A stretch of DNA of 64,000 bases from Macrostomum hystrix (GCA_950097015.1 CATNEN010000001.1:5146001-5210000); one strand, 5' to 3'; shown: positions 26,842-49,014, counted from the stretch's first letter. Made by a program: numbers and translations. The notes: a model not told the origin generated them from the letters alone.

Positions 26842-28664
26842 AACAAAAGCTAAAAAAGATTTTTACTTAAATGTTTTAAAAATGTTTATTATTTATTTAA
26901 TTAAAAAGTTTTTTAAAAGAATTTCTTTTTTAATTATTTATTTGTTTTCAATAGACATATCAGCCTAACTCTAAGCAAATTTTTGGCAGTTGGCATACAA
27001 GGAAACTTTATTTATAATGTATGGGTAAATCCATTATGGGTAAGATGACCAGATATATAAAAATTTTGTGTCTAATGCAATATTTTAATGCTGTTTTAGC
27101 CTTTTTTCATTGCAAAGTTGTGCTAAATCAACATTTATGTTATTAAAATTAATTTGCATTTCCATTTCAGATTAATGACTGCCGTTTTGATGGATTCATA
27201 TGGAAATATAATTTGAAAATGTTTGAAAATGGCATGTCTTTTTTGGGTGATAAAAGGTGTTTATTAAATTGTATCTAGATATACATCTTTAAATAGTTGT
27301 CAAGCTTTTCTTATCTCTAGCTAATATATGCAAAAATGTTGTTTTACTGCTTTAAGCTTTTTAAAAGAAGCTCTCCCATTTTTGTCCACCATTTTTGTTG
27401 TCTCTTTGTCACATTGGCTTACTTAGAGCTATTTTGCAAGCACAATATGTCCCATCATTGTTGGCATAACTTTTGCATGTCACTAAAAATTTATGTGACC
27501 TAGTATATTATTGTTTCCTAAGAAAAAATATATTGTTGAACAGTAGAATCACTGTGCTCAAGATCTATAATATTTTGGTCATTGTCATTTGCTTGCAAAA
27601 TACAGCACAACTTGTCACAACATCAATAATCTCATTGTTGGGACCAACAAATTTGTGCTGCTTTTGATGTTAGGACTCCAATTTTTTAATCCTAATACTT
27701 GTATCGAAGAGCAGTAACATTTAATTATGAAAGATTTAATTGATTTTAATGCTTTCTTTGCAGATCAGCAGATGGCACGTAAGCTACTAGTTGTGACTGC
27801 TGCAAGAGTAAGAAAAAGAGAATGTCATCTTCAATACCAGGAAAGGAAGAAGAAAGAAAGCAAGGCTGCATTTTATGCCAAGAACAATGAGGCCTGTAAG
27901 AAATACAGGAAAAACCAGAAGCACATCTATTCTAAAAGCAAGCATGCTGCTTGTGCAAATCAAAGATATGAAACTGAGCAGAAGCAAGCTTGGCGCTTAA
28001 AAAAGTGACAATAGGCCAGTGAAAGCCTTAGCCAATCTTTGCCAACAGTTGTAGCTAGTAGCCCAGTAGGGTTGACTTGCCCTTGTACTTCTAGGATTAA
28101 ACAGACATCAAGCCAAAGTTCTGTTTATCAGCCAACAAGCATTTGCCCCAGTCCAATGGACTCCACTAACTCCATAGTCAAGAAGGTGGCCTCTGAGGGG
28201 GAAAATTCCTGCGCACACAAAGGGTCTTGGCACACATTAGCACACACAAAGGGTCTCAGCACATATTGGCGCACAAGTGAGGTGTACACAAAAGCTCATT
28301 GGCCCATAAGCTGCAGTACACACTATAAATTCCTAGAAGTCATAATTTGTCATAAATTGTATATTTATTATTCTAACTTCCATTTTTCAAATAGTGAAAT
28401 TGTTCATAATTTTTTGTGCTGCATAGCATTGAATCATTGATCATTGTATTTATCTTATCAACTGTGTTACAATTACTGTATAGTGCACGGCTGATGCACA
28501 GATGGCACACAGATTGTCCCTCCAAAATTTATTCTGGTGCACACTCTGCCACCTTCTTGACTATGGCACTAACTCAAGGCGAAAGGCAGCTGCACTAGCT
28601 TGTGAGAAGCATAGAAAAAGAGAAACTCAGCTGGAGCTTAAGAAAGTTATAGGGACTTCAGCAG

Positions 28665-28935
28665 CATACATGCTCAACCTCCCAAATCTTAGCTGGCCGT
28701 GCGACTTAGTTTTTGCTCTCATTTGCGACTTAGTTCATTTCATTGCTCTATATACAACTTAGTTTGCTCTCATTTGCTCTCTTTTTCTCTCCCCTTTTTC
28801 CTTTTCTTCATGCCTTCCTTTTTTGTCCCTAGGTCCCCCTTTGATTTTTTTGTGCTTGGTTGATTGGTTTTTGTGACTTACCTTGCTTGGCCCTTGTTTC
28901 ACCCGGCCGGTGTGGCCGGGTGTTGCACATGTATG
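28665..28935. mobile_element. hAT-type MITE, same family as 48664-48926 in the opposite orientation
   Basis: Termini CATACATGCTCAAC...GTTGCACATGTATG; the body aligns by eye to the reverse complement of 48664-48926. Confidence 0.75.
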
Positions 28936-29449
28936 TTGGCTAAGCAGATATATTGCAAGGTAATTTAGAGCATGAATATTAATTAATTAAGATATTTCAA
29001 CATTAAACATAATCTACAAATGTTATGAAACACTGACTTCATATTAAAGCTTTTGAATGCTCTTATTACCAGGTTCCCATGTGCTGCTGCTAAACAGAAG
29101 GAGATAACAGCTGCTGAAATGCACAAGGCAAATTGCCACATTTTCCATGCCAGCAGCAGAAAGCATCTGCAAAAGCTACGCCAAGTACAAGAAGAGCATG
29201 CAAGGCAAGAAGGCTAGAGGTCACTTTTGACATCATGGCTAAGTTCAAGCAGTCACAACCCATTCTTAAGATGGTCAAAAAGGTTAAACCTTTAAATTCT
29301 GCCTTAATGATTTAGTCTTAAAATGTAAATCTACCCTAATTTCTTAATGCAATTAATTAATTTGATTCTGAGATTACCTAAAGTACTTTTCATATCGTAC
29401 AGATCTGCTGCAAAGCCCATTGCAATGCAAGGCGCTTTCTTGTCAGGAA

Positions 29450-31492: not shown

Positions 31493-33194
31493 GTAAGAGC
31501 CTCTTTTATTTTACCTTAAGTATCTTTGAAGCAACCAGGATTAAATATTAAAAACTTGCTTTTCACAAAGGTCACTTAGACATTTCACAAGTCAAACAAA
31601 ATCAAATTACCAATATTGTAATTATCTCGTATAATTATTCTTTTGTATTGTCTCAGAAGTTAAAAAATTGCTAGCAGTCTTGCAAAAAGAATTGTGATTA
31701 TGAAAATATTTACTAATTGATATTAATATTTCAATATTATGAAAATTACATCAGACCATCAGTATTATTTTAATTATATAATATAAATATAATATAGTAG
31801 GGTGAAATCTCATCAACCGAACAAGAAAATGTCATTTTCAAACATTCCATGTTTGATAACAAAAAAACTAAACAAGATAAGAAAATCAAATTTACCGGTA
31901 CTTGTTAAAAACAATTTTATCTTTCAAATGAAAGTCTACTCATCCAAATCGGTTAACTACAAAAAAAGTTGTGTCTATTTTTGTTTCAATTCCGAACAAT
32001 GAATTTCCCATTTCATCAAACCGAACGATGTTTCTGATGTTCGGTTTTTTTTTATTTGCCCAAAAAATTGACTTCTGCTCAATAAAAAGCTATAACAAAA
32101 CAGTGTAAAAGAAAGAAAAAATCATGCTGCATCGATTTAAGTAAAGTTCAATAGTCCGATTTGATAAGAAGAGGGTTATTTTTTACATCGAAGTATGTAC
32201 CCCCCACCCGAGTCAAATAGTGCAATTTTCATTCCATCTTGAGTTTTCCTGCTTCAGGCACACTAAACAGCGAAACAAACAGCGAAAAAGTCATGTGCTG
32301 TCTTTGCTCATGAGTTTCCTATGGTTCGTGGAGTTTATAGTCTTTTGCAACGAAGCCTTTAGTGACAAACTCACCCTCATTTCATAATTTTAGGCCTGGC
32401 AGTACTTGCGATATCTCAGACTTAAAGTCGCTGCAGCTTTATTATGCAAACACAGATGCTTGGTAAAACTTTAAAGTAAATAAAAACCGTGCAGAACTTC
32501 AAGTTAAAATCGGTTTCTCCAAGTTTAAAAGTGTTTACGCTGACTAATGAGAATTAATGTAACTCACTTACACAAAAAATGTCCATTTTTTCGAAATCTT
32601 TCATACTTTTTTCTGAGCGTGTTTTTCTACTGCCAGACTACTAGTCCTACTGGCAGTAGTCTGTTGCGGGAATTTTAAAAGCTAAAGCAAATGATCCCAG
32701 CTCTTAGGAAAAAAAAGATTGAAGGTCCAATAAAGGCTAGGCTACACAACTGGGCCTCCTTGGCAGACAGGGCAGAGAAGGAGACAAAGGCGGGAGAGAG
32801 CCGAACAGACCATTGTGTGATCTCCATGGCAACCGAGTTTCACAAATGACAATTGTTGGCAACGATGAATGACAGGGCGAGGCCTAGCCAAAGGTATGAA
32901 GAAGCAATCTGGACTGGAAGCCGACCCCCTGACTCGACTTGTTGGAGGCCACTTAAATTTGCTCATCAATACACAGCAGATAGACAAAGTAGGCCTAGCA
33001 TTAGGCCTATAGGCCCCTAGGCCTAGCACATAAAGAAAGGCCATAAATGAGAGCAAGTACTTGGGGCCTAATTTCAAGGCCGAAAATTTACTCTGGAACT
33101 TGATCTTTAACAAAAAATGGATGCAGTCACAATGCAGGGAGACAAAAAGAAGATGAGGAAGAGAGCTGAAGATATATAGCGACTAGGCGTTAAA

Positions 33195-33555
33195 AAGGAG
33201 AGAGAGGAGAAGGGTAAGAGAGAGAAGGAGAGGGGGGAGACGTAGAAGGAGAGGGGAAGACAGAGAAGGAGAGGGGAAGACAGAAAAAATGAGGGGAAGA
33301 CAGAGAAGGAGAGGGGAAGACAGAAAAAATGAGGGGAAGACAGAGAAGGAGAGGAGAAGACAGAGAAGGAGAGGGGAAGACAGAGAAGGAGATGGGGAGG
33401 ACAGAGAAGGAGAGTGGAAGACAGAAAAAATCAGGGGAAGACAGAGGAGGAGAGGGAAAGACAGAAAAATAAGGTGAAGACAGAGAAGGAGAGGGGAAGA
33501 CAGAGAAGGAGAGGGGAAGACAGAGAAGGAGAGGGGAAGACAGACAGAGAAGGAG
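33195..33555. repeat. GA-rich ~20-bp minisatellite (GAGGGGAAGACAGAGAAGGA)
   Basis: Direct inspection. Confidence 0.9.
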
Positions 33556-35957
33556 AGGAAGCTGAGAGCCAGAAAGAAGAGGGCGGAAGTGAGGAAGCTG
33601 AGAGCCAGAAAGCAGAGGTTAGGAGTGAGGAAGCTGAGAGCCAGAAAGAAGAGGTTAGGAGTGAGGAAGCTGAGAGCCAGAAAGAAGAGGGCGGGAGTGA
33701 GGAAGCTGAGAGCCAGAAAGAAGAGGGCGGAAGTGAGGAAGCTGAGAGCCAGAAAGAAGAGGGCGGGAGTGAGGAAGCTGAGAGCCAGAAAGAAGAGGGC
33801 GGGAGTGAGGAAGCTGAGAGCCAGAAAGCAGAGGTTAGGAGTGAGGAAGCTGAGAGCCAGAAAGCAGAGGTTAGGAGTGAGGAAGCTGAGAGCCAGAAAG
33901 AAGAGGGCGGAAGTGAGGAAGCTGAGAGCCAGAAAGAAGAGGGCGGGAGTGAGGAAGCTGAGAGCCAGAAAGAAGAGGGCGGGAGTGAGGAAGCTGAGAG
34001 CCAGAAAGAAGAGGGCGGATGAGGAAGCTGAGAGCCAGTAAGAAGAGGGCGGATGAGGAAGCTGAGAGCCAGAAAGAAGAGGGCGGGAGTGAGGAAGCTG
34101 AGAGCCAGAAAGCAGAGGTTAGGAGTGAGGAAGCTGAGAGCCAGAAAGAAGAGGGCGGGAGTGAGGAAGCTGAGAGCCAGAAAGAAGAGGGCGGGAGTGA
34201 GGAAGCTGAGAGCCAGAAAGAAGAGGGCGGGAGTGAGGAAGCTGAGAGCCAGAAAGAAGAGGGCGGATGAGGAAGCTGAGAGCCAGTAAGAAGAGGGCGG
34301 ATGAGGAAGCTGAGAGCCAGAAAGAAGAGGGCGGGAGTGAGGAAGCTGAGAGCCAGAAAGAAGAGGGCGGATGAGGAAGCTGAGAGCCAGTAAGAAGAGG
34401 GCGGATGAGGAAGCTGAGAGCCAGTAAGAAGAGGGCGGAAGTGAGGAAGCTGAGAGCCAGAAAGAAGAGGGCGGATGAGGAAGCTGAGAGCCAGTAAGAA
34501 GAGGGCGGATGAGGAAGCTGAGAGCCAGAAAGAAGAGGGCGGATGAGGAAGCTGAGAGCCAGTAAGAAGAGGGCGGATGAGGAAGCTGAGAGCCAGTAAG
34601 AAGAGGGCGGATGAGGAAGCTGAGAGCCAGTAAGAAGAGGGCGGATGAGGAAGCTGAGAGCCAGAAAGGAGAGGGCGGGAGTGAGGAAGCTGAGAGCCAG
34701 AAAGAAGAGGGCGGATGAGGAAGCTGAGAGCCAGTAAGAAGAGGGCGGATGAGGAAGCTGAGAGCCAGTAAGAAGAGGGCGGAAGTGAGGAAGCTGAGAG
34801 CCAGAAAGAAGAGGGCGGATGAGGAAGCTGAGAGCCAGTAAGAAGAGGGCGGATGAGGAAGCTGAGAGCCAGAAAGAAGAGGGCGGATGAGGAAGCTGAG
34901 AGCCAGTAAGAAGAGGGCGGATGAGGAAGCTGAGAGCCAGTAAGAAGAGGGCGGATGAGGAAGCTGAGAGCCAGTAAGAAGAGGGCGGAAGTGAGGAAGC
35001 TGAGAGCCAGAAAGAAGAGGGCGGGAGTGAGGAAGCTGAGAGCCAGAAAGAAGAGGGCGGAAGTGAGGAAGCTGAGAGCCAGAAAGAAGAGGGCGGGAGT
35101 GAGGAAGCTGAGAGCCAGAAAGAAGAGGGCGGATGAGGAAGCTGAGAGCCAGTAAGAAGAGGGCGGATGAGGAAGCTGAGAGCCAGTAAGAAGAGGGCGG
35201 AAGTGAGGAAGCTGAGAGCCAGAAAGAAGAGGGCGGAAGTGAGGAAGCTGAGAGCCAGAAAGAAGAGGGCGGGAGTGAGGAAGCTGAGAGCCAGAAAGCA
35301 GAGGTTAGGAGTGAGGAAGCTGAGAGCCAGAAAGAAGAGGGCGGGAGTGAGGAAGCTGAGAGCCAGAAAGAAGAGGGCGGATGAGGAAGCTGAGAGCCAG
35401 TAAGAAGAGGGCGGATGAGGAAGCTGAGAGCCAGTAAGAAGAGGGCGGAAGTGAGGAAGCTGAGAGCCAGAAAGAAGAGGGCGGGAGTGAGGAAGCTGAG
35501 GGCCAGAAAGCAGAGGTTAGGAGTGAGGAAGCTGAGAGCCAGAAAGAAGAGGGCGGGAGTGAGGAAGCTGAGAGCCAGAAAGAAGAGGGCGGAAGTGAGG
35601 AAGCTGAGAGCCAGAAAGCAGAGGTTAGGAGTGAGGAAGCTGAGAGCCAGAAAGAAGAGGTTAGGAGTGAGGAAGCTGAGAGCCAGAAAGAAGAGGGCGG
35701 GAGTGAGGAAGCTGAGAGCCAGAAAGAAGAGGGCGGAAGTGAGGAAGCTGAGAGCCAGAAAGAAGAGGGCGGGAGTGAGGAAGCTGAGAGCCAGAAAGCA
35801 GAGGTTAGGAGTGAGGAAACTGAGAGCCAGTAAGAAGAGGGCGGGAGTGAGGAAGCTGAGAGCCAGAAAGCAGAGGTTAGGAGTGAGGAAGCTGAGAGCC
35901 AGAAAGAAGAGGGCGGGAGTGAGGAAGCTGAGAGCCAGAGAGAAGATGGCGGGAGTG
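33555..35957. repeat. 36/34-bp minisatellite (GAGGAAGCTGAGAGCCAGAAAGAAGAGGGCGGGAGT)
   Basis: Direct inspection; 34-bp variants shift the frame, so the ORFs here are spurious. Confidence 0.95.
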
Positions 35958-36622
35958 TAAATGTGAGTGAGGCTGTGAATGTAAGTGAGGCTGTGAATGT
36001 GAGTGAGGCTGTAAATGTGAGTGAGGCTGTTAATGTAAGTGAGGCTGTGAATGTGAGTGAGGCTGTAAATGTAAGTGAGGCTGTGAATGTAAGTGAGGCT
36101 GTGAATGTGAGTGAGGCTGTAAATGTGAGTGAGGCTGTGAATGTAAGTGAGGCTGTGAATGTGAGTGAGGCTGTGAATGTGAGTGAGGCTGTAAATGTGA
36201 GTGAGGCTGTTAATGTAAGTGAGGCTGTGAATGTGAGTGAGGCTGTAAATGTAAGTGAGGCTGTGAATGTAAGTGAGGCTGTGAATGTGAGTGAGGCTGT
36301 AAATGTGAGTGAGGCTGTGAATGTAAGTGAGGCTGTGAATGTGAGTGAGGCTGTGAATGTGAGTGAGGCTGTAAATGTGAGTGAGGCTGTGAATGTAAGT
36401 GAGGCTGTGAATGTGAGTGAGGCTGTGAATGTGAGTGAGGCTGTGAATGTAAGTGAGGCTGTGAATGTGAGTGAGGCTGTGAATGTGAGTGAGGCTGTGA
36501 ATAAAGCTGTGAGTGTGAATAAGGTTGTAAATAAAGCTGTGAATGTGAGTGAGGCTGTGAACGTGAGTGACGCTGTGGAAAAGTTGTGAGTGTGAATAAG
36601 GCTGTGAATGAGGCTGTGAATG
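35958..36622 (+). repeat. 18-bp minisatellite (GTGAGTGAGGCTGTGAAT), outer left arm
   Basis: Direct inspection; inverted counterpart at 44225-44712 shares the variant tail GACGCTGTGGAAAAGTTG. Confidence 0.93.
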
Positions 36623-37744
36623 ATCTCACAGTGTTTATCATTTGCAGCATGTCTGTGTCATTTTGAATAGCTGTATATCCCTCCCATTGTGTGTCACTTC
36701 TTTGTTATCCATTGCTTACTGTATATTGACAGCAGCGGATCTCACAGTGTTTATCATTTGCAGCATGTCTGTGTCATTTTGAATAGCTGTATATCCCTCC
36801 CATTGTGTGTCACTTCTTTGTTATCCATTGCTTACTGTATATTGACAGCAGCGGATCTCAAGGGCTACTCAATGAATTGAAAATGCAGAAAAACTGAGTA
36901 TTCGAAACCCAAACTAGATCAGTGAGTCTGGCTGTGAATGAGGCACTGAATGAGGCAGTGAATGTGAATGAGGCTGTGAATTAGATAGGGTGAGCTAGCT
37001 TTAAAGCAAGTTATGCCTTGCTTGACTTGAACCAGGTAATTGTCATGATTGCGCAATAATCCCCTTTTTGTGTTAGTGTTTTATTTTTAATAGGAACGCA
37101 GTTCTGGGGTAAGTAATACTCAATCTGTTTTTGGTCCTTATCTGTTGGAGGTGTGATTGACAGTTTTGCATGCAGTCATGAAGCTACACTGTTCATTATT
37201 GACACCAGGTTGATATAAACGTATCTTTTTTGACTACAATACTTACATTAACAAAACCAATAGTCTTGCGCAATGCCGCTAGGCCTAGCACCCCCAGTTT
37301 TAGGCCTCTCCAACTGTTGCGCAATGTCGAAAAAATCGAGCTTCTGTTTCGATCTCAAGGTTTGTGCTGTGCACGAGGTTGTAAATGTGGCTATGAATGT
37401 TAGTGAAGATGTGAATGAGGCTGCGAATGTGAGTGGGGCTGTGAATGTGGGTGAGGCTGTGAATAAAGTTGTGAGTGTGAATAAGGCTGTGAATGAGGCT
37501 GTAAATGATTTCACAGCGCTTAAGATTTGCAGCATGTCTGTTTCATTTTGAATAGCTGTATATCCCTCCCATTGTGTGTCACTTCTGTGTTATCCATTGC
37601 TTACTGTATATTGACAGCAGCGGATCTCACAGTGTTTATCATTTGCAGCATGTCTGTGTCATTTTGAATAGCTGTATATCCCTCCCATTGTGTCACTTCT
37701 TTGTTATCCGTTGCTTACTGTATATTGACAGCAGCGGATCTCAA

Positions 37745-39085
37745 GAAGGCGCCGCTTCAAGACAGTTAGAAACTGCTGAAAAAGCAGGCCGCATGCGTCA
37801 TCTGTGCAGCTGTGTATATCTGTCTCATCTAGTGTCATTTCTGAGTCTTCTATTTGATTCTGTATATAGAAGGCGCCGCTTCAAGACAGTTAGAAACTGC
37901 TGAAAAAGCAGGCCGCATGCGTCATCTGTGCAGCTGTGTATATCTGCCCCATCTAGTGTCATTTCTGAGTCTTCTATTTGATTCTGTATATAGAAGGCGC
38001 CGCTTCAAGACAGTTAGAAACTGCTGAAAAAGCAGGCCGCATGCGTCATCTGTGCAGCTGTGTATATCTGTCCCATCTAGTGTCATTTCTGAGTCTTCTA
38101 TTTGATTCTGTATATAGAAGGCGCCGCTTCAAGACAGTTAGAAACTGCTGAAAAAGCAGGCCGCATGCGTCATCTGTGCAGCTGTGTATATCTGTCCCAT
38201 CTAGTGTCATTTCTGAGTCTTCTATTTGATTCTGTATATAGAAGGCGCCGCTTCAAGACAGTTAGAAACTGCTGAAAAAGCAGGCCGCATGCGTCATCTG
38301 TGCAGCTGTGTATATCTGTCCCATCTAGTGTCATTTCTGAGTCTTCTATTTGATTCTGTATATAGAAGGCGCCGCTTCAAGACAGTTAGAAACTGCTGAA
38401 AAAGCAGGCCGCATGCGTCATCTGTGCAGCTGTGTATATCTGTCCCATCTAGTGTCATTTCTGAGTCTTCTATTTGATTCTGTATATAGAAGGCGCCGCT
38501 TCAAGACAGTTAGAAACTGCTGAAAAAGCAGGCCGCATGCGTCATCTGTGCAGCTGTGTATATCTGTCCCATCTAGTGTCATTTCTGAGTCTTCTATTTG
38601 ATTCTGTATATAGAAGGCGCCGCTTCAAGACAGTTAGAAACTGCTGAAAAAGCAGGCCGCATGCGTCATCTGTGCAGCTGTGTATATCTGCCCCATCTAG
38701 TGTCATTTCTGAGTCTTCTATTTGATTCTGTATATAGAAGGCGCCGCTTCAAGACAGTTAGAAACTGCTGAAAAAGCAGGCCGCATGCGTCATCTGTGCA
38801 GCTGTGTATATCTGTCCCATCTAGTGTCATTTCTGAGTCTTCTATTTGATTCTGTATATAGAAGGCGCCGCTTCAAGACAGTTAGAAACTGCTGAAAAAG
38901 CAGGCCGCATGCGTCATCTGTGCAGCTGTGTATATCTGTCCCATCTAGTGTCATTTCTGAGTCTTCTATTTGATTCTGTATATAGAAGGCGCCGCTTCAA
39001 GACAGTTAGAAACTGCTGAAAAAGCAGGCCGCATGCGTCATCTGTGCAGCTGTGTATATCTGCCCCATCTAGTGTCATATCTCAG
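37745..39085 (+). repeat. 124-bp tandem array, ~10.8 copies (inner left arm)
   Basis: Unit GAAGGCGCCGCTTCAAGACAG...TGATTCTGTATATA starts at 37745, 37869, 37993 ... 38985. Confidence 0.97.
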
Positions 39086-39256
39086 TATTTTGTCTAGCAT
39101 TGAAATAGCGCAGCGAAAATGTGTTTTTGAATTATGGTGCAAGTTTTATACATTTTACGCAGTTATTACAAGTATATTACAAGAGCAATTACAAGTATAA
39201 AGTTAAAGATTAAAAAGTTTCGTGCAAATAATAGATAAGAGCAAACAGTTAATTCT

Positions 39257-41074
39257 TTATAAAAAATTGTCTAAGCGAGACTCAATTTCTAGTTTGCTGG
39301 CCTTCGCCATTTGTTCGTAGGCTTGGTGGAGCTTTTTGGAGGCATTGTTTGGAGTCGGCTCTGCTCCGCTTACAAGCTGCCACCGGTGGAGCCAGGCACT
39401 CGACGGCGGTTTATCGAAAAATTGCACATGAATTTTTAGAGTGCAAATGCCTTTTGTGCAGCTCGAACCGTGGCTGGGTAGGCAAACCATTGCCGGCCAC
39501 CAGTTTTCTCCGTCCGTTGGCCAGTAGCCGAGAACAAGGCAGCCTGGCTGAATTTCTTGCCGCTCAACTTCTGGCCGCTTGCTCGCTGGACTAGCGGCGC
39601 TGGTGCTGGCGCTGAACTCTGGACGTCGCTTTAGAGCCAAGCGGTTACCCGGCGGCTTGGCGGAGTCGACTTTAGCGCCAGCAGCAGGCAGGTCGGCGCC
39701 AGCAGCAGACAGGTCGGCGCCAGCAGCAGACAGGTCGGCGCCAGCAGCAGACAGGTCGGCGCCAGTAGCAGGCAGGTCGGCGCTAGCAGCAGGCAGGTCG
39801 GCGCCAGCAGTAGGCAAGTCGGCGCCAGCAGCAGGCAGGTCGGCGCCAGCAGTAGGCATGTCGGCGCCAGTAGCAGGCAGGTCGGCGCCAGCAGCAGACA
39901 GGTCGGCGCCAGCAGTAGGCATGTCGGCGCCAGCAGCAGGCAGGTCGGCGCCAGCAGCAGGCAGGTCGGCGCCAGCAGCAGGCAGGTCGGCGCTAGCAGC
40001 AGCCGACGAGCTCGAGCTCGCCGTCCAATTTTTGGTGGCCTGCCGGTACGAGGTGAGCTGCTGCTGCAGCCCACCATCGAAGATGCGCTGGTAGCGCGCC
40101 GAAATCAGAAAGTTTCCGACCTTCTCAAGGGCGGAAACTGTCTGCTTCAGCATTGAGTATGTCAGGCTGTCCAAGTAGGCGCTTACCGCGCCACGCCGAT
40201 CCTCGCCGATCAGCTGCTCAAAGCTGACTATGTCGAGGCGCTGCATCAGCCGTTTCAGATAGCACCGGATTTCCCGGACCGTAGCCGGTTTTCTGCGTCC
40301 GCCGAGCGAGCTCGCTAGGAAGACGCACAGGGCCTCAACATCAGCGGCTGAAGGATGCTCGGCCACCACCGCTCTGGCCGGCACTTTTAACCTGGCGTCA
40401 GCCAGCTTTTGTTGTTTTGCCGCTCTGACAGCGACAGGATGGCTGTTGCGCAAGTGGCTGGATAATAGATTCGGATTATTCCGCCACTCGCCGCAGATGT
40501 GGCACTGCTGCGCCATCTCCGGCATCGGGCTGGCAGTCAGCTGATGGGTGTGCAGCTTAACTGCCGCACGCACAGCTTTTAAGGCCTCTTTTTGAAGCGC
40601 AGCTTCAGATGAAATTCCGGTTGCTGCTAGCTGCTGCTTTGTGCTCTCTAGCACAGTCACGTGGGATCTTTTTAGGTGCTCGCTGAAGCGGGACTTTTTT
40701 ATTGGCAAGCAATTTCCGAAAGGGCAGATGTACTCTTGCCCGGCCCGCATCTTCTTCGGCTCAACGGCGGCAGGCTGTTGGACGGTGGCGGGCTGTTGGA
40801 CGGTGGCGAGCTGTTGGACGGTGGCGGGCTGCTGGACGGTAGCGGGCTGTTGGACGGTGGCGGGCTGTTGGACGGTGGCGGGCTGTTGGACGGTGGCGGG
40901 CTGTTGGACGGTGGCGGGCTGCTGGACGGTGGCGGGCTGCTGGACGGTGGCGGGCTGCTGGACGGTGGCGGGCTGCTGGACGGTGGCGGGCTGCTGGACG
41001 GTGGCGGGCTGCTGGACTTTGCTGGAGGTCCATTTCTCCCATTGAAGAAGTTTTTCAATGAAGGATTTTTCCAT
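39257..41074 (-). CDS. 605-aa intronless protein: (QQPATV)n, two C2H2-like zinc fingers, putative integrase core-binding (SAM-like) helical domain, (ADLPAAG)n linker, C-terminal PWWP domain
   Basis: Open frame with AAAAATG start, visibly GC-richer than its flanks. Fingers: YICPFGNC...FSEHLKRSH and QCHICGEW...LSSHLRNSH. PWWP: GCLVLGYWPTDGENWWPAMVC...IHVQFFDKPPSSAWLH...LHQAYEQM. Basic NLS-like LKRRP and KRPE motifs. The SAM-like call is weaker. Confidence 0.8.
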   Translation of the reverse strand: MEKSFIEKLLQWEKWTSSKVQQPATVQQPATVQQPATVQQPATVQQPATVQQPATVQQPATVQQPATVQQPATVQQPATVQQPATVQQLATVQQPATVQQPAAVEPKKMRAGQEYICPFGNCLPIKKSRFSEHLKRSHVTVLESTKQQLAATGISSEAALQKEALKAVRAAVKLHTHQLTASPMPEMAQQCHICGEWRNNPNLLSSHLRNSHPVAVRAAKQQKLADARLKVPARAVVAEHPSAADVEALCVFLASSLGGRRKPATVREIRCYLKRLMQRLDIVSFEQLIGEDRRGAVSAYLDSLTYSMLKQTVSALEKVGNFLISARYQRIFDGGLQQQLTSYRQATKNWTASSSSSAAASADLPAAGADLPAAGADLPAAGADMPTAGADLSAAGADLPATGADMPTAGADLPAAGADLPTAGADLPAASADLPATGADLSAAGADLSAAGADLSAAGADLPAAGAKVDSAKPPGNRLALKRRPEFSASTSAASPASKRPEVERQEIQPGCLVLGYWPTDGENWWPAMVCLPSHGSSCTKGICTLKIHVQFFDKPPSSAWLHRWQLVSGAEPTPNNASKKLHQAYEQMAKASKLEIESRLDNFL

Positions 41075-41230
41075 TTTTTGAAACCGAAAAATATACTTAA
41101 AATAGGATTATATGATTAAAAATGTATCTAGAGTCATGACTTAAATACGATGCCTGTGCTCAAAGGTGGGGATGAAGTCAGTCATCGGCCAATAAAAATA
41201 TAGATAGCATATCATTGGTTTTGGCTTTCG
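41075..41230 (-). promoter_or_regulatory. Candidate promoter of the PWWP ORF
   Basis: TATTTAA on the minus strand at 41141-41147, about 70 bp upstream of the ATG; CCAAT motifs at ~41189 (+) and ~41214 (-). Confidence 0.35.
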
Positions 41231-41746
41231 ACAGTCTTTGCAAAAACATAACAAGTCTCATTCAAATTTCAAATTGGAAATTGGAATTGGAATTGGAAGC
41301 ACTGCTTTGCCTCCGATTTAAAATTGCGCAATCATAAATTTAGTGCAACAAAAATGCTCCTCACATAGGTGTCACCGTCTATCATTCACCACCTCTAAAC
41401 ACTCGAGTCTATTTGAGTGTTCAAGTTGCGCAAACTCGACCATATTGATAATACGTACTTCGTGAACAACTTTTTAAAAAGCCGCGAAGTATATATTATC
41501 TATTACTCAACTCAAAAAACTGTCGAGAGATAGAAAAACCGCAAATCTCACACCGCACAAAACAACCGTGCATCATGGCTCCATAGGACCCATGGTATCC
41601 ATGGCACCCATGGTATCCATGGCACCAGGATATCAAATAAAAGAAAAAATAGTTTCGTCACCAAAAAAATTGCGCCATACAACCAAACAAATATTGCAAA
41701 TCGTAAACTTTATCACTAACAATTCGATCCTCATAAGCATCATAGG

Positions 41747-43987
41747 GGCGCCTTCTATATACAGAATCAAATAGAAGACTCAGATATGACACTAGATGGG
41801 GCAGATATACACAGCTGCACAGAAGACGCATGCGGCCTGCTTTTTCAGCAGTTTCTAACTGTCTTGAAGCGGCGCCTTCTATATACAGAATCAAATAGAA
41901 GACTCAGATATGACACTAGATGGGGCAGATATACACAGCTGCACAGATGACGCATGCGGCCTGCTTTTTCAGCAGTTTCTAACTGTCTTGAAGCGGCGCC
42001 TTCTATATACAGAATCAAATAGAAGACTCAGATATGACACTAGATGGGACAGATATACACAGCTGCACAGATGACGCATGCGGCCTGCTTTTTCAGCAGT
42101 TTCTAACTGTCTTGAAGCGGCGCCTTCTATATACAGAATCAAATAGAAGACTCAGAAATGACACTAGATGGGACAGATATACACAGCTGCACAGATGACG
42201 CATGCGGCCTGCTTTTTCAGCAGTTTCTAACTGTCTTGAAGCGGCGCCTTCTATATACAGAATCAAATAGAAGACTCAGATATGACACTAGATGGGGCAG
42301 ATATACACAGCTGCATAGAAGACGCATGCGGCCTGCTTTTTCAGCAGTTTCTAACTGTCTTGAAGCGGCGCCTTCTATATACAGAATCAAATAGAAGACT
42401 CAGATATGACACTAGATGGGGCAGATATACACAGCTGCACAGATGACGCATGCGGCCTGCTTTTTCAGCAGTTTCTAACTGTCTTGAAGCGGCGCCTTCT
42501 ATATACAGAATCAAATAGAAGACTCAGAAATGACACTAGATGAGACAGATATACACAGCTGCACAGATGACGCATGCGGCCTGCTTTTTCAGCAGTTTCT
42601 AACTGTCTTGAAGCGGCGCCTTCTATATACAGAATCAAATAGAAGACTCAGATATGACACTAGATGGGGCAGATATACACAGCTGCACAGATGACGCATG
42701 CGGCCTGCTTTTTCAGCAGTTTCTAACTGTCTTGAAGCGGCGCCTTCTATATACAGAATCAAATAGAAGACTCAGAAATGACACTAGATGGGACAGATAT
42801 ACACAGCTGCACAGATGACGCATGCGGCCTGCTTTTTCAGCAGTTTCTAACTGTCTTGAAGCGGCGCCTTCTATATACAGAATCAAATAGAAGACTCAGA
42901 AATGACACTAGATGGGATAGATATACACAGCTGCACAGATGACGCATGCGGCCTGCTTTTTCAGCAGTTTCTAACTGTCTTGAAGCGGCGCCTTCTATAT
43001 ACAGAATCAAATAGAAGACTCAGAAATGACACTAGATGGGACAGATATACACAGCTGCACAGATGACGCATGCGGCCTGCTTTTTCAGCAGTTTCTAACT
43101 GTCTTGAAGCGGCGCCTTCTATATACAGAATCAAATAGAAGACTCAGAAATGACACTAGATGGGGCAGATATACACAGCTGCACAGATGACGCATGCGGC
43201 CTGCTTTTTCAGCAGTTTCTAACTGTCTTGAAGCGGCGCCTTCTATATACAGAATCAAATAGAAGACTCAGAAATGACACTAGATGGGACAGATATACAC
43301 AGCTGCACAGATGACGCATGCGGCCTGCTTTTTCAGCAGTTTCTAACTGTCTTGAAGCGGCGCCTTCTATATACAGAATCAAATAGAAGACTCAGAAATG
43401 ACACTAGATGGGGCAGATATACACAGCTGCACAGATGACGCATGCGACCTGCTTTTTCAGCAGTTTCTAACTGTCTTGAAGCGGCGCCTTCTATATACAG
43501 AATCAAATAGAAGACTCAGAAATGACACTAGTTGGGACAGATATACACAGCTGCACAGATGACGCATGCGGCCTGCTTTTTCAGCAGTTTCTAACTGTCT
43601 TGAAGCGGCGCCTTCTATATACAGAATCAAATAGAAGACTCAGAAATGACACTAGTTGGGACAGATATACACAGCTGCACAGATGACGCATGCGGCCTGC
43701 TTTTTCAGCAGTTTCTAACTGTCTTGAAGCGGCGCCTTCTATATACAGAATCAAATAGAAGACTCAGAAATGACACTAGATGGGGCAGATATACACAGCT
43801 GCACAGATGACGCATGCGGCCTGCTTTTTCAGCAGTTTCTAACTGTCTTGAAGCGGCGCCTTCTATATACAGAATCAAATAGAAGACTCAGAAATGACAC
43901 TAGATGAGACAGATATACACAGCTGCACAGATGACGCATGCGGCCTGCTTTTTCAGCAGTTTCTAACTGTCTTGAAGCGGCGCCTTC
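41747..43987 (-). repeat. 124-bp tandem array, 18 full copies, inverted relative to 37745-39085 (inner right arm)
   Basis: GGCGCCTTC ends at 41755, 41879 ... 43987 (period 124). Confidence 0.97.
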
Positions 43988-44224
43988 TTGAGATCCGCTG
44001 CTGTCAATATACAGTAAGCAATGGATAACAAAGAAGTGACACAATGGGAGGGATATACAGCTATTCAAAATGACACAGACATGCTGCAAATGATAAACAC
44101 TGTGAGATCCGCTGCTGTCAATATACAGTAAGCAGTGGATAACAAAGAAGTGACACACAATGGGAGGGATATATAGCTATTTAAAATGACACAGACATGC
44201 TGCAAATCTTAAGCGCTGTGAAAT

Positions 44225-44712
44225 CATTCACAGCCTCATTCACAGCCTTATTCACACTCACAACTTTTCCACAGCGTCACTCACGTTCACAGCCTCACTC
44301 ACATTCACAGCTTTATTTACAACCTTATTCACACTCACAGCTTTATTCACAGCCTCACTTACATTAACAGCCTCACTCACATTTACAGCCTCACTCACAT
44401 TCACAGCCTCACTCACATTCACAGCCTCACTTACATTCACAGCCTCACTCACATTTACAGCCTCACTCACATTCACAGCCTCACTTACATTCACAGCCTC
44501 ACTTACATTTACAGCCTCACTCACATTCACAGCCTCACTTACATTCACAGCCTCACTCACATTTACAGCCTCACTCACATTCACAGCCTCACTTACATTC
44601 ACAGCCTCACTCACATTTACAGCCTCACTCACATTCACAGCCTCACTCACATTTACAGCCTCACTCACATTCACAGCCTCACTCACGTTTACATTTATGG
44701 CCTCATTCACAG
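44225..44712 (-). repeat. 18-bp minisatellite, outer right arm (inverted copy of 35958-36622)
   Basis: ATTCACAGCCTCACTCAC repeats. Confidence 0.93.
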
Positions 44713-45104
44713 TCTTACATGTATATACAGCTTTTTCACATCTTTACCCACACTTTTAGTGTGTTAGTATTTTGATTTTAAGATTAAAAAGTTATTGTTA
44801 GTTGGTACAATTAAAAAGATATGTACCAAGACTATTGGCAGTAGTTTTTCAGATTTTGTTCTGCTTTTTGCGGTTAGAACTTAAATTCTGTCTTTGTTTT
44901 GCAGTGCTTAAATATACACTATTTTTTTTAATTCAGTTTTTACGCAAGCATGGATCTTGGTTTTTTCGCATATATCTCATGCGTCATTTCTCATTCTGGC
45001 GTCATACAAACCCCCCTGTGCACCTAATTGGTTCTTTATTAAATGTAACACATGCAGTTAGGCCCTTATCTTTCTACCTTCATCCATATCCATACAGTTT
45101 AGTT

Positions 45105-45190
45105 CAGGGGTCGGCAAACTCCAGCCCGCGAGCCAGATGCGGCCCTCGAAGCTCCCAAATCCGGCCCGTTGCCCCCTTCCGACACCTAGT
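45105..45190. mobile_element. hAT/Charlie-like MITE terminus fragment
   Basis: CAGGGGTCGGCAAAC...GCCCGCGAGCCAGATGCGGCCC is a typical hAT end with GGCCCG-type subterminal motifs. Confidence 0.5.
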
Positions 45191-45192
45191 AT

Positions 45193-45981
45193 CCTGTCTC
45201 ATCTCTCCCCTGTCTTATCTCTCCCCTGTCTCGTCTCTCCCCTGTCTCATCTCTCCCCTGTCTTATTTCTCCCCTGTCTCATCTCTCCCCTGTTTCATCT
45301 ATCCCTGTCTTATTTCTCCCCTGTCTCATCTCTCCCCTGTTTCATCTATCCCCTGTCCTATTTCTCCCCTGTCTCATCTCTCCCCTGTCTTATTTCTCCC
45401 CTGTCTCATCTCTCCCCTGTTTCATCTATCCCTGTCTTATTTCTCCCCTGTCTCATCTCTCCCCTGTTTCATCTATCCCCTGTCTTATTTCTCCCCTGTC
45501 TCATCTCTCCCCTGTTTCATCTATCCCCTGTCTTATTTCTCCCTTGTCTCATCTCTCCCCTGTTTCATCTATCCCCTGTCTTATTTCTCCCCTGTCTCAT
45601 CTCTCCCCTGTTTCATCTATCCCCTGTCTTATTTCTCCCTTGTCTCATCTCTCCCCTGTTTCATCTCTCCCCTGTCTTATCTCTCCCCTGTCTCGTCTCT
45701 TCCCTGTCTCATCTCTCCCCTGTTTCATATCTATCCCCTGCCTTATTTCTCCCTTGTCCCATCTCTCCCCTGTTTCATCTCTCCCCTGTTTCATCTCTCC
45801 CCTGTCTTATCTCTCCCCTGTCTCGTCTCTCCCCTGTCTCATCTCTCCCCTGTTTCATCTCTCCCCTGTCTTATCTCTCCCCTGTCTCGTCTCTCCCCTG
45901 TCTTATCTCTCCCCTGTCTCATCTCTCCCCTGTTTCATATCTATCCCCTGCCTTATTTCTCCCTTGTCTCATCTCTCCCCT
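45193..45981. repeat. CT-rich ~18-bp minisatellite (CTCCCCTGTCTCATCTCT)
   Basis: Direct inspection. Confidence 0.93.
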
Positions 45982-47332
45982 ATAGTAGGGGCCGGGGCAT
46001 ATTGCCATATTTCTTAGTTAGAAGCCAATTGATATACCAAAGAATCGGACTTAAACTTAGGCCTAACTGAAACAAAGGCACAAAGATTTCTTTGGTATAG
46101 GCTAGGCCCCCCTATATATAGCTAAATAGCTAGGCAGTTTGCTGGCAGCTACATGTAGGCGTCCTATCTAGTCATTGATAGTTTGGTCGGTGCTGGACAA
46201 TCAGCTGTATAGCATGCGATTTGCCATCATGCATGGACTCTGTTGCAGAGAGGCAATTGCCAATTTGGTGGCAATGCAGATTGCGATGACTTGCTGCATT
46301 ATAGACTTGGCATAAGACGATAAGAGGACCTGCACAGACCATAGGTTCAGTATGGTTTAGTTGTAAAGAGGATCCACTGGACAGGCAGGCACGTGGAAAC
46401 CGGATGATTCATGCGTTGTCTGCTTGTCTAATTATAATAGTTGTCCCAACTTGTCCATTCTGAAATGATTTTTTGAAGAAAAATATATTCAAAGTATATT
46501 CATACCAAATTTTGCTACTGCAAGTAGTAATCAAAACATTTGACAAACTAAATTCAACGAAAGAGTAAATTTGAATAATGAAAATTTGGCCGCATCTGAA
46601 ATGAAAAAAGTAACAAAATTAAAGATAATAAAACTAGAGTTTTGAGGCTTTAGATTACGTGTAATGATTTGTGAGAGAGGAAAAAACATTCTTACTATAC
46701 ATATTTGTCAAATTCGACACTTAAAGCGACAAAAAAGGCATGTTCGGTTTGATGAATTTCTGTTCGGTTTGATGAAACGTCTATCTGAAAACCGAACGGA
46801 GCAGCAAATTCTGTTCCATCAACCGAACAAGAAAAAGAACTGAGTAAATACTAGAGTATTTCACACAAAATATATTGCATTCTGTACAGAATTTAATATT
46901 GAATCCAAAGAGTGGTTATAGTCTCAAATCAGATAAGTTTTGTGGGTTTAAGAGTATTTCTTCTGCACACCTATGATTTTCAATAATCTTGCAAATAAGC
47001 GATTTTTTTACTTTCTTCAGAACTTCTTGGCCTATAACTTTTTTCGTAGTGAATATCATAATAAAACGATAGCACGAAACTGTTTATGAATTAGTCTGCT
47101 GTAAGTTAAGTGGTTTTTACAGATAAAAGCCGATCTCGATGCAAGACAGGAGGTTAAATTCGGCCATGACTTTGTTGTTCGGTTTTGATGAGACATTGTT
47201 CGGTTGATGAGATTTCACCCTATATTATTTTATACTTTGTTGTCTGAAATTATATATATTTTAAAAAATATGATTTTTAGGCCTATCTGATATAAATGAC
47301 TAAGCTAAGACAAGCAATTTAGTCCAAAATAA

Positions 47333-49014
47333 ACATCCTATTTTCCAGTACCAGTAACAGTAGGCCCCTACCACAAAAAAATAAAAGTTAAAACAATGGG
47401 TCATAACAATGAAGCATGTGCAATTTCAGCTTTCTACCTACAGCATCCAGGGCTGGAGCAGTGGACCCTTTAAGTGTGTCTCCCCACCCCAGCCATAGAA
47501 GCCTCTGCTACTAAGGTCATGACAACCCTTTAAAAAGTGTGAAAGCTTCACTGAAACTGTTAGGACAAAGATGTGACAGGGTTTTGAAGGTTTGTGAATG
47601 GTGCAGAAAGATTTTGAAGTATTTTGTTGGCAGAGTTAATTAATGGATTTGGTTAGAGCAGTAAATTAGGCATATGTGCACCCTCCTTTTTCAATCTGGC
47701 TTGGGACAGACTTTGGCAAAGTTACTCACAAAGTTTTTATTTGTATTATGTTATGATCACAAAGCATGGCTGCTTACAGTTTTAAACACAATTATGTGTT
47801 AAGTTTTAGTTATGAACAGACAAAAATAATATTAAAAAATGTATTATTCATATTTTGCCAAAAATTAATTTGCTAAGTAGAATTTAAATATTCTAATCAA
47901 CTATGCTAATCATAAAAAGCTACCTTCTATGATTTGTATGGTAGTTTTCTTTGTTGGAGTGTTTCCGCTTTTCGATGATAGATTTCGATGATGCCTCAGC
48001 GAGTAGATGAGGCATCACTTTTTTACATGTTCGATAATTCAATGAACTCCACCTGTCTTATCTAAATGTAAATCGCACCCAGGCCGGTCAGCCAGTAAGT
48101 TTAACTGCTTTTCTGAGTACAACGTTTTTAGAAACAGGTCAAACTCAAAGCTTTGAATGAAGCATTTTATGGAATTTCTTTCACTGTCCATATTTCGCAT
48201 AATTTTTGCATAATATGAAGTTCTTTAATGACATTTTTGTGCACAGGTCCTTCTTCTTTGACTTCTAGCTTCACGTTAATTCACCAAATAGCTGGAAGAG
48301 ATTTGACACATGAAAAGTCGTTCTCATCTATCTCTTTTTCTGTCATTGACACCAAAAGCTCTTCATACAGTTCAGCCAGACTTTTTTCTTTCAAAAGCTC
48401 TTTAAATTTTTCTGCTTAATCAGCTGTAACTTTACTTAGAGTTGGAAAGTTGTGCCTTTTCTGTCCTTGTGTTGAAACTAATAGCGTAATATCTTCATGT
48501 GCTATTCTTGGCAATGTTTTTAATATAAAATTAAAAATTGACTAATTTCGGCATATCTGAAGTTGCCAAAAGGCCATATGGCTGGGGTGGGGAGAAACAC
48601 TTTAAGGGTCCACTGCTCCGGCCTGGATGCTGTAGGAAGCTGAAATTGCACATGCTTCATCTACATACATGCGCAACACCCGGCCGAACCGGCCAGGTGA
48701 AACGAGGGCCAAGCAAGGTAAGTCGCAAAAACCAATCAACCAAGTGCAAAAGAATCAAAGGGGGGACCAAGGGACAAAAAAGGAAGGCGTGAAGAAAATG
48801 AAAAAGGGGATAAAAAAGAGAGCAAATGAGAGCAAACTAAGTCGCAAATGAGAGCAAACTAAGTCATAAATAGAGCAAAAACTAAGTCGCACGGCCGGCT
48901 AAGATTTGGGAGGTTGCGCATGTATGCTCATCTACAGCCATGGCAATTAATTTTTTCTATTACCACCCTTTAAACTTTTATTTTTTCCCATACTGGTACT
49001 GGAAAATAGGATGT
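47333..49014 (-). mobile_element. Decayed Mutator-like element with long imperfect TIRs
   Basis: Termini ACATCCTATTTTCCAGTACCAGTA and TACTGGTACTGGAAAATAGGATGT; direct repeat CAAAATAA at 47325-47332 and 49015-49022; further inverted match 47409-47497 vs ~48577-48660; internal minus-strand relic LYSEKQLNLLADRPGCDLHLDKTGGV resembling the MULE first-Asp (D-x-T-G) motif. Confidence 0.65.
48664..48926. mobile_element. hAT-type MITE inserted in the right TIR of the Mutator-like element
   Basis: 14-bp TIR CATACATGCGCAAC / GTTGCGCATGTATG; 8-bp TSD TTCATCTA / CTCATCTA. Confidence 0.85.

Follow-up and report, generated by a model that had tools for sequence, protein, structure and literature searches.

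How does a single gene come to lie between kilobases of inverted satellite DNA, and which part of such a structure is the unit that moves? These questions are raised by a stretch of 64,000 nucleotides from the flatworm Macrostomum hystrix (GCA_950097015.1, CATNEN010000001.1:5146001-5210000; this whole stretch is called the window), in which positions 35958-44712 hold a unique loop with one open reading frame (ORF) between two arms that mirror each other. In a preliminary description this structure had been taken for a Foldback-type element of the kind of FB, Galileo and TU, with a zinc finger-PWWP gene as a novel sole cargo and with the arms as the limits of the mobile unit. The analysis described here leads to a different reading, which we consider probable: the locus is a foldback formed by a truncated, Crypton-like tyrosine recombinase (YR) element whose protein ends in a PWWP domain, and this foldback is nested in a non-autonomous carrier of the pogo type. 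The genome-wide searches on which this reading draws cover the 220-Mb assembly to which the window belongs, and C1, C2, C3 and so on denote contigs of that assembly, the window being part of C1.

The Inverted Arms and Their Loop

Arrays called with Tandem Repeats Finder and arms located by an inverted-repeat search of the window reproduce almost base for base the mirrored order that had been described, that is, an 18-bp array, a block of ~110 bp and a 124-bp array on either side of a 2.66-kb loop (Table 1). The inverted-repeat search pairs 37465-39089 with 42643-44267 (1625 nt, 99% complementary) and, further out, 36154-36808 with 44039-44693 (95% complementary). These arms qualify as foldback arms, being long, inverted and built from tandem arrays (of 18-, 116- and 124-bp units). 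The surplus of ~880 bp that had been noticed in the left arm is real and amounts to 885 bp (36622-37506), consisting of two 116-bp blocks plus a unique piece of 604 bp. The loop contains, as had also been stated, one intronless ORF.

A Tyrosine Recombinase Gene without Its Catalytic Domain

The description of the loop gene as a zinc finger-PWWP gene is borne out in one half and needs qualification in the other. The PWWP domain (PF00855) scores 27.9 bits against a Pfam cut-off of 25.6, and its closest matches are the PWWP of MSH6 (E 1e-5) and then those of NSD2 and NSD3 (E 7e-4 to 3e-3). The PWWP domains of these three proteins are readers of methylated lysine 36 of histone H3 (H3K36me), and by similarity the window PWWP is predicted to be of this reader type. 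The two zinc fingers are recognized by invariant Cys/His columns in the family alignment, while the corresponding Pfam match is weak (zf-C2H2_4, E 0.46).

A large part of what precedes the PWWP domain belongs to a recombinase. Amino acids (aa) 108-366 of the ORF are colinear with the N-terminal half of the YR family described in the next section, with two Cys/His pairs invariant, and the alignment diverges exactly where that family runs on into its catalytic domain. In a model of the N-terminal part (predicted local distance difference test, pLDDT, 79), aa 241-358 superpose on the integrase of Brujita (Z 10.4), XerA (9.4), XerD (9.1) and lambda Int (8.0), and the top nine structural neighbours are all N-terminal core-binding domains of tyrosine recombinases. 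Although this match carries the helical-bundle caveat of the comparison tool, the core-binding assignment is secure enough because the fold match agrees with the sequence colinearity. A copy on C38, the nearest to the window ORF in nucleotides (86-89%), keeps the catalytic exon (74-77% aa identity), and the window form therefore goes back to an in-frame genomic deletion, which starts late in exon 1 and reaches into the repeats of the last exon; it is not a retrocopy. The window ORF is thus a tyrosine recombinase without catalytic domain, fused to a PWWP domain, and alignment, fold and the C38 copy together dispose of the idea of a zinc finger-PWWP protein as a novel cargo. A word-indexed protein search finds no homologue of aa 108-366 and, started from the family alignment, two proteins only, and the window ORF has no Pfam match to Phage_integrase, DUF3504 or GCR1_C.

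Full-Length Relatives

Four long relatives of the loop gene, the loci L051 to L054 (on C39, C14, C2 at 9.09 Mb and C12), are similar to the window ORF in two segments ~2 kb apart, with 66% identity to aa 23-364 and 52% to aa 356-605. These elements span 11-19 kb, with their 5' junctions near C39:6624692, C14:1389702, C2:9078505 and C12:1391842, are 98-99% identical to one another and share one sharp 3' terminus in four different flanks, and they behave as a recently mobile element. In the C39 copy (L051), the first exon ends at a GT donor at ~5190 and is followed by a 433-bp intron and by an exon (5624-6083) that is not in the window; its exons were searched separately and not as a joined spliced model.

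With this extra exon as query, an exhaustive phmmer search against 1.84 billion representative sequences finds seven proteins, one of them a hypothetical protein of Macrostomum lignano, and residues R20, K49, R118, H143 and Y152 are invariant in the resulting family. The spacing of these residues (25 from R to H, 9 from H to Y) is, we take it, that of the Arg...His/Trp...Tyr set of XerD and Cre. In a VIA-align comparison of an AlphaFold2 model (7 sequences, pLDDT 70), every one of the 24 closest structural neighbours is a tyrosine recombinase or a type IB topoisomerase (Z for XerA 9.2 over 140 of 153 residues, IntI 8.9, XerH 7.7, Cre 7.2, lambda Int 7.0 and Flp 5.2), after which come unrelated 60-residue matches. 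Foldseek against the PDB also places recombinases first, but with E of at least 0.37, and a sequence-profile search of the PDB returned no recombinase and chance zinc-finger matches only. On its model, the extra exon looks like a YR catalytic domain. The protein that it encodes is 100% identical and free of stops in the four long copies, and copies of the exon in the genome number about 14 close ones and about 15 distant ones. No reverse transcriptase is present in the 10-kb loci of the long relatives, in which the ORFs of at least 150 aa are the YR-PWWP gene and translated repeats. Literature searches brought up no account of a transposase or recombinase with a PWWP domain, nor of these Macrostomum repeats.

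Tandem repeats are frequent in the family. Intron 1 of L051 (5191-5623) is nearly all a ~20-bp tandem repeat and the protein has three in-frame repeat tracts, so that minisatellites accumulate in introns, exons and flanks alike. A 35-bp satellite that occupies window 1-22092 with 609 copies resembles, by its translation, the array that immediately follows the long element of C39 on its 3' side (L051:8554-10000).

Origin of the Arms and a Shared Motif

The arms likewise have counterparts in the long relatives. Upstream of their gene, the long relatives carry sequence that matches the 116-bp blocks and the 604-bp piece at 94-99% identity. In the whole genome, the 604-bp piece is restricted to the copies of the structure on C1 and C3 and to the four long elements; in the three of the latter in which its repeats are countable, it recurs 4-7 times with a period of 1.1-2.3 kb, and is thus part of a higher-order repeat. 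The 18-bp array also adjoins the 5' terminus of the full-length elements. Window 44721-45016 is 98% identical to the outermost 5' sequence of the long elements, with homology ending at position 296-302, which means that the right arm includes the complete 5' end of a recombinase element. No inverted repeats were found in the four long-relative loci, and the parent element is therefore not a foldback. By these homologies, the arms are the 5' arrays of the parent YR element, duplicated in inverted orientation.

Arms and parent termini have a sequence in common. Homology links the 116-bp unit, the 124-bp unit and the last 120 bp at the 3' end of the long element, whose two tips are imperfect inverted repeats of each other over ~40 bp. 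An 11-mer, GYGTCAYTTCT, is present at 29 places in the window, where 0.15 would be expected; most arm units have one copy, the 5' tip has one (44981-44991), and the rest of the window has none. The 11-mer is also found at the 3' tip of the long element, and at either terminus it lies ~25-35 bp in from the end. Repetition inflates the count, and the meaningful figure is that of four independent contexts (116-bp unit, 124-bp unit, 5' tip and 3' tip), which make the 11-mer a candidate recognition motif. Its presence in both arms and parent termini fits a protein that binds its own arrays, as had been proposed, and such binding is predicted here.

Copies in the Genome

The 124-bp unit and the ORF co-occur with the same architecture at unlinked loci, namely on C1, C3, C11 and C2. 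A six-frame search of the genome matches the ORF at 99-100% on C1 and C3, at 98% on C2 and also on C11, with a more diverged match on C38; the ORF is intact on C1 and C2 and has one stop on C3 and three on C11. The 124-bp unit is confined to loci of the element (C1, C3, C11, C2 and C29, with a trace on C38) and at the ORF-bearing loci stands on the plus strand before the ORF and on the minus strand after it. Partial copies of the structure exist on C29 and C38, and module BLAST shows that array copy numbers vary among the copies. The structure is multi-copy, and four loci with sharp ends and different flanks rule out an assembly artefact or a local inverted duplication. Of the view that this is a young mobile or virus-derived unit, the first part holds, as the copies are young (see below), multiple and mobile; a viral derivation was dropped because no viral gene was seen in any copy that was read.

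On C2 (C2:2961697-2968152), 124-bp arms enclose an intact ORF with no pogo-type shell around them, and this copy adjoins a truncated paralogous zinc-finger gene. Its left 124-bp array cuts an open frame (C2:2961385-2961697) that has two C2H2-like fingers and resembles the N-terminus of the recombinase family, and distant YR-exon fragments lie 6-7 kb further left (C2:2954526-2955554); this arrangement points to a paralogous element into which the copy was inserted or with which it recombined. A block of 1671 bp that adjoins the 124-bp array is 100% identical between C29 (L047:4440-6110) and C2:2968153-2969823, which reflects either a very recent duplication or an assembly duplication. Also on C29 (C29:1608530-1609096), an open frame of 189 aa encodes a PWWP domain only, 34% identical to that of the window, and is preceded by a 20-unit 124-bp array and by the 103 bp that in the window are the part of the loop closest to the right array. 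This frame is a second, more extreme deletion derivative.

The Outer Element

The unit that C1, C3 and C11 have in common is larger than the foldback. These copies share 97-99% identity from window 31798 to 47217-47222 and have unrelated flanks beyond, which defines an outer element of 15.4 kb (31798-47222) that extends 4.2 kb and 2.5 kb outside 35958-44712; the arms, which had been thought to bound the mobile unit, lie inside it. Its terminal inverted repeats (TIRs) are perfect over 27 bp in the window copy, and the same ends are found on C3 and C11. TA is present at every end read, that is, at both ends in the window and on C3 and at the right end on C11. A reading of the TAGGG... end as that of a hAT element was rejected, there being no 8-bp duplication. 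Paired ends located genome-wide with terminal 500-bp probes give the four copies listed in Table 1; in addition there are a lone left end (C2:4681133) and, on C33, a ~293-bp copy that resembles a miniature inverted-repeat transposable element (MITE). The first 503 bp of the outer element occur at 5 large loci and in this MITE-like copy, and the last 50 bp are common to about 35 further loci at 84-86%.

The affiliation of the carrier is given by genes in its sister copies. The C11 copy contains a 136-aa ORF with an HTH_psq domain (E 9e-5) and a weak match to the Tc5 transposase DNA-binding domain. Six of the seven genome matches to this ORF lie in or beside copies of the TIR family (C11, C2:4.69 Mb, C1:2.426 Mb, C39:17.77 Mb and C1:19.44 Mb), the match at C1:2.426 Mb being an open frame of 616 aa, and the same is true of all four genome matches to Pfam DDE_1 (C11:918966, C2:4688004, C39:17764146 and C1:19444785). 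Neither domain is found in the window copy or the C3 copy, which are therefore non-autonomous. The outer carrier belongs to a pogo-type (Tc1/mariner superfamily) DNA transposon family. The copy at C1:2.42 Mb has no match to the ORF, the 124-bp repeat or the 604-bp piece, showing that the carrier also exists without the foldback insert.

Two further repeats were noted in and around the outer element. A pair of 275-bp inverted sequences (28663-28936 and 48663-48928, 88.7% identical), with related copies on C38, brackets the whole pogo-type element at a distance of ~2.9 kb on the left and 1.4 kb on the right; it may be a small repeat that is present twice, or it may mark the termini of a larger nested element. 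Window 45098-45190, the last ~90 bp before the 16-bp array, occurs at more than 25 loci genome-wide (90-98%) and is a separate short dispersed repeat.

Both Orientations of the Loop

The outer parts of the structure are asymmetric, since the 604-bp piece shares its side with the 20-, 36- and 18-bp arrays, and the side across the loop has the 296-bp tip, the 16-bp array and the right unique region. The window copy has the 604-bp side next to the 3' end of the ORF, whereas on C3 and C11 this side (or the corresponding left side) is next to the 5' upstream region of the ORF; the same contrast is seen between C2 and C29 relative to their shared 1671-bp flank. The orientation of the loop is opposite between copies, and the loop has thus inverted. 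Recombination between the arms is the simplest account, and it may have occurred by homologous recombination or by the action of a full-length recombinase in trans.

Age, Selection, and Transcription

Copies of the short (truncated) family differ by a synonymous divergence (dS) of only 0.004-0.017. Compared with the long family, dS is saturated and the ratio of nonsynonymous to synonymous divergence (dN/dS) is 0.08 in the N-terminal part and 0.18 in the PWWP part; these low values reflect constraint over the history of the family and not on the truncated form. The loop is present in eight sequencing runs of one organism (Logan contigs). In a genomic run its depth is ~265-400, with 14,000-19,000 on the 124-bp arrays, and in another run the contigs end in template-switch and Nextera adaptor tails, which identify a complementary DNA (cDNA) library.

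Table 1. Features of the window and copies of the outer element. Window positions are counted from the first nucleotide of the window; contig positions carry the contig name.
Feature	Position	Strand	Basis or remark
Left 27-bp TIR, TAGGGTGAAATCTCATCAACCGAACAA	31798-31824	+	Identical to reverse complement of 47196-47222; C1/C3 homology stops sharply here
Left unique subterminal region	31798-33198	+	97.5% identity to C3 copy
20-bp array (33199-33544) and 36-bp array (33555-35957), internal satellites	33199-35957	+	Both also, inverted, in C3 copy
18-bp array, outer left arm	35956-36577 (34 copies; feature to 36621)	+	Tandem Repeats Finder, module BLAST
116-bp block x2.1, left arm	36622-36860	+	Tandem Repeats Finder
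604-bp unique piece, left arm	36861-37464	+	Module BLAST
116-bp x2, 604-bp piece and 116-bp x2, one unit of the higher-order 5' repeat of full-length YR elements	36622-37743	+	94-99% identity to L051-L054
124-bp array x10.8, inner left arm	37744-39086	+	Tandem Repeats Finder
Unique loop, 2.66 kb	39090-41746		One ORF inside
Loop, 3' side of ORF	39090-39256	-	97-99% conserved in C3, C11 and C2 copies
Intronless 605-aa ORF, intact	39257-41074	-	ORF call, Pfam, alignment, models
QQPATV repeats	ORF N-terminus
Two zinc fingers	aa ~113-212, 40439-40738	-	Invariant C/H columns in family alignment
YR core-binding domain	aa 241-358, 40001-40354	-	Predicted structure
Deletion junction	After aa ~366		Family alignment
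GADLPAA repeats	Between deletion junction and PWWP
PWWP domain	aa 521-592, 39299-39514	-	Pfam
Loop, 5' upstream side of ORF	41075-41746	-	Module BLAST
124-bp array x18.1, inner right arm, inverted	41747-43988	-	Tandem Repeats Finder
116-bp block x2.1, right arm, inverted	43989-44225	-	Tandem Repeats Finder
18-bp array, outer right arm, inverted	44270-44686 (arm feature 43989-44693)	-	Tandem Repeats Finder
5' terminal 296 bp of Crypton-like YR element	44721-45016 (tip ~45016)	-	98% identity to all four long elements
Right part: 174-bp piece, 16-bp array (45193-45981), unique region, right TIR (47196-47222)	45017-47222	+	98.6-99% to C3, C11
Outer-element copy C1 (window)	C1:5177798-5193222		15.4 kb
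Outer-element copy C3	C3:240315-252600		12.3 kb
Outer-element copy C11	C11:911037-936623		25.6 kb
Outer-element copy, second on C1	C1:2418170-2431493		13.3 kb

A Probable Nested Derivative and Its Alternatives

In the account that we hold to be probable, a genomic deletion in a Crypton-like element would have removed the introns and the catalytic exon in frame, leaving an intact ORF, and the parent's 116-124-bp 5' arrays would have come to lie, inverted, on both sides of the gene, giving rise to the foldback. The outer layer, itself non-autonomous, would be mobilised in trans by the DDE transposase of sister copies, and recombination between the inverted arms would flip the loop and produce both orientations among the copies. 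The truncated protein might still bind the 11-bp motif, which is available once per arm unit and at the parent termini, and might read H3K36me chromatin through its PWWP domain; it would then be a catalytically dead binder that acts as a regulator, competitor or tether of recombinase elements. It is in this conditional sense that we infer DNA binding, chromatin tethering and the earlier proposed roles in targeting, anti-silencing and segregation for the ORF protein.

Several observations weigh against this account. Pfam finds no recombinase family in the exons of the long relatives or in the seven family members (no Phage_integrase, DUF3504 or GCR1_C), and the YR fold matches depend on models with a pLDDT of 70-79, for each of which 7-8 sequences were used. 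The TA dinucleotides, read at 2 left and 3 right ends, may be the first two bases of the TIR and not a target duplication. The transposase genes of the sister copies are placed by coordinates alone, and there is no DDE_1 match for the C1:2.42 Mb copy. The C2 copy is a foldback module without the pogo-type carrier, which means that the module exists on its own and perhaps moves on its own. Two of the four short-family ORFs are intact, and their age is too low to allow a measurement of selection on the truncated form. Finally, the contigs of the cDNA library cover the ORF and the non-coding loop alike and so show the presence of the loop but not expression of the ORF strand, and the one 5' end tagged by the template-switch oligonucleotide (39185, plus strand, run X3), 72 bp beyond the stop codon of the ORF, reads rightwards and is antisense to it; since inverted arms flank the loop on either side, transcription of both its strands is possible.

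The C2 copy is also the starting point for the alternative closest to the preliminary description, a true Foldback-type transposon in which the arms are the transposition substrates, arms and ORF move together, and the pogo shell is just one landing site, which later amplified this unit. This is rather improbable. It would account for 124-bp arms and an ORF outside the shell, for outer array ends that on both sides of the C2 copy fall at the same point of the unit (TGCGTCAT...), a junction shared with C29, and for array copy numbers that vary among copies as they do in FB elements. However, what C1, C3 and C11 share reaches 2.5-4.2 kb past the arms and ends in short TIRs, no 7-9-bp duplication but at most TA is seen in the flanks, and no FB/Galileo-type (P-like) transposase was found in the copies read, the only enzymes linked to these sequences being YR and pogo DDE. 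Moreover, the position of the C2 copy by a truncated zinc-finger gene and by a block 100% identical to C29 fits recombination or segmental duplication equally well. Since the arms are not the termini of the moved unit and the transposases are of the pogo DDE_1 type, the assignment to FB, Galileo and TU is not supported. Even less credence, so little that it hardly competes, is due to a domesticated host gene, that is, a chromatin factor with zinc fingers, core-binding domain and PWWP domain that descends from a Crypton and has repeats around it incidentally. The ORF is indeed intact on C1 and C2, its dN/dS against the long family is low, and loss of the catalytic domain with retention of the DNA-binding parts is the usual route of Crypton domestication (PMC3212892). 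Nevertheless, the gene is multi-copy and very young, carries stops in two of four copies, always lies within mobile sequence at unlinked sites and has no homologue in the word-indexed protein search, and the low dN/dS stems mostly from a long shared history as a transposon protein.

A different kind of alternative concerns the loop and not the carrier. It proposes an invertible segment, likened to that of FLP, in which the full-length YR of sister elements flips the loop in trans at the 124-bp site arrays and so switches the arm that lies upstream of the ORF; we regard it as unlikely. Both loop orientations among otherwise near-identical copies, arm units that each carry a motif also found just inside both YR-element termini, and YR genes in the genome whose catalytic exon is intact and identical in four long copies all speak for it. 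On the other hand, ordinary homologous recombination would also be enough to invert arms that are 1.3-3.2 kb long and 99% identical, both orientations at one locus are not in evidence, and the crossover site is as putative as the link between motif and recombinase. The fuller form of this proposal, in which each 124-bp array would be a series of recombination sites, the loop a flip-flop segment on an animal chromosome that is flipped in trans, and the resident protein a dead, site-binding and H3K36me-reading regulator or tether, likewise has a small chance of being right.

Relation to Known Systems and Significance

The truncated YR-PWWP foldback in its pogo-type carrier belongs to known kinds, a Crypton-like element and a Tc1/mariner composite, and is not a new system. 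Its closest precedent is MarCry-1_FO of Fusarium oxysporum, in which a Crypton sits within a mariner element that has TIRs of 16 bp and TA duplications (Kojima and Jurka, 2011, PMC3212892). In both cases a YR element lies within an element of the Tc1/mariner superfamily that has short TIRs and TA flanks, and the carrier is the unit that is multiplied. The locus studied here differs in that the carrier is of the pogo type (HTH_psq and DDE_1) and has no transposase in the window copy, that the recombinase gene lacks its catalytic domain, that there are multi-kilobase inverted satellite arms and an invertible loop, and that the host is a flatworm.

The long relatives resemble Cryptons (CryptonF, S, A, I and V) in having a single intron-containing protein with YR catalytic and N-terminal DNA-binding domains, in being mobile and in showing no reverse transcriptase. 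In contrast to Cryptons, the window ORF is without the Arg-Lys-Arg-His-Tyr catalytic set, which the long relatives have, and no Pfam match to Phage_integrase, DUF3504 or GCR1_C was obtained for the window ORF, the long exons or the family members scanned. Cryptons are described as having no TIRs and as ending in 4-6-bp terminal direct repeats (PMC3212892; restated in PMC13465315); the long elements have an imperfect inverted repeat of ~40 bp at their termini, kilobases of higher-order 5' tandem repeats and a C-terminal PWWP domain. With Foldback elements (Drosophila FB, Galileo of the 1360/P superfamily, sea urchin TU), the locus shares long, modular and repetitive inverted arms of variable copy number around a central loop, but here the arms are not the ends of the transposed unit and the enzymes are YR and pogo DDE, not P-like. 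The yeast 2-micron FLP/FRT system is similar in that a unique segment between long inverted repeats occurs in both orientations and the enzyme of the family is a tyrosine recombinase; unlike it, the segment is chromosomal here and the local gene has no catalytic domain, homologous recombination is an equally good cause, and any site or activity is putative. As in the Crypton-derived host genes (ZMYM2-4, QRICH1, KCTD1 and KIAA1958), a recombinase-derived protein is no longer able to recombine; however, those genes are ancient and single-copy, whereas the window ORF is young, multi-copy and partly pseudogenised, and QRICH1 matches the catalytic-exon model only weakly (Z 3.1).

New in this locus are a derivative from which the catalytic domain was deleted, arrays that were duplicated in inverse orientation to make a foldback, the isomers of the loop and the nesting in a pogo-type element. 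It implies that a foldback architecture can arise without a foldback transposase, through inverted duplication of 5' arrays and their spread by a cut-and-paste carrier, and it provides a second example, here in an animal, of a composite of the mariner superfamily and a Crypton. The natural deletion of the catalytic domain may also serve as a probe of whether the protein recognizes the 11-bp motif and whether it chooses its chromatin via H3K36 methylation. If the inversions of the loop are driven by an enzyme, there would be a site-specific inversion system in the genomes of a genus of regenerating model animals.

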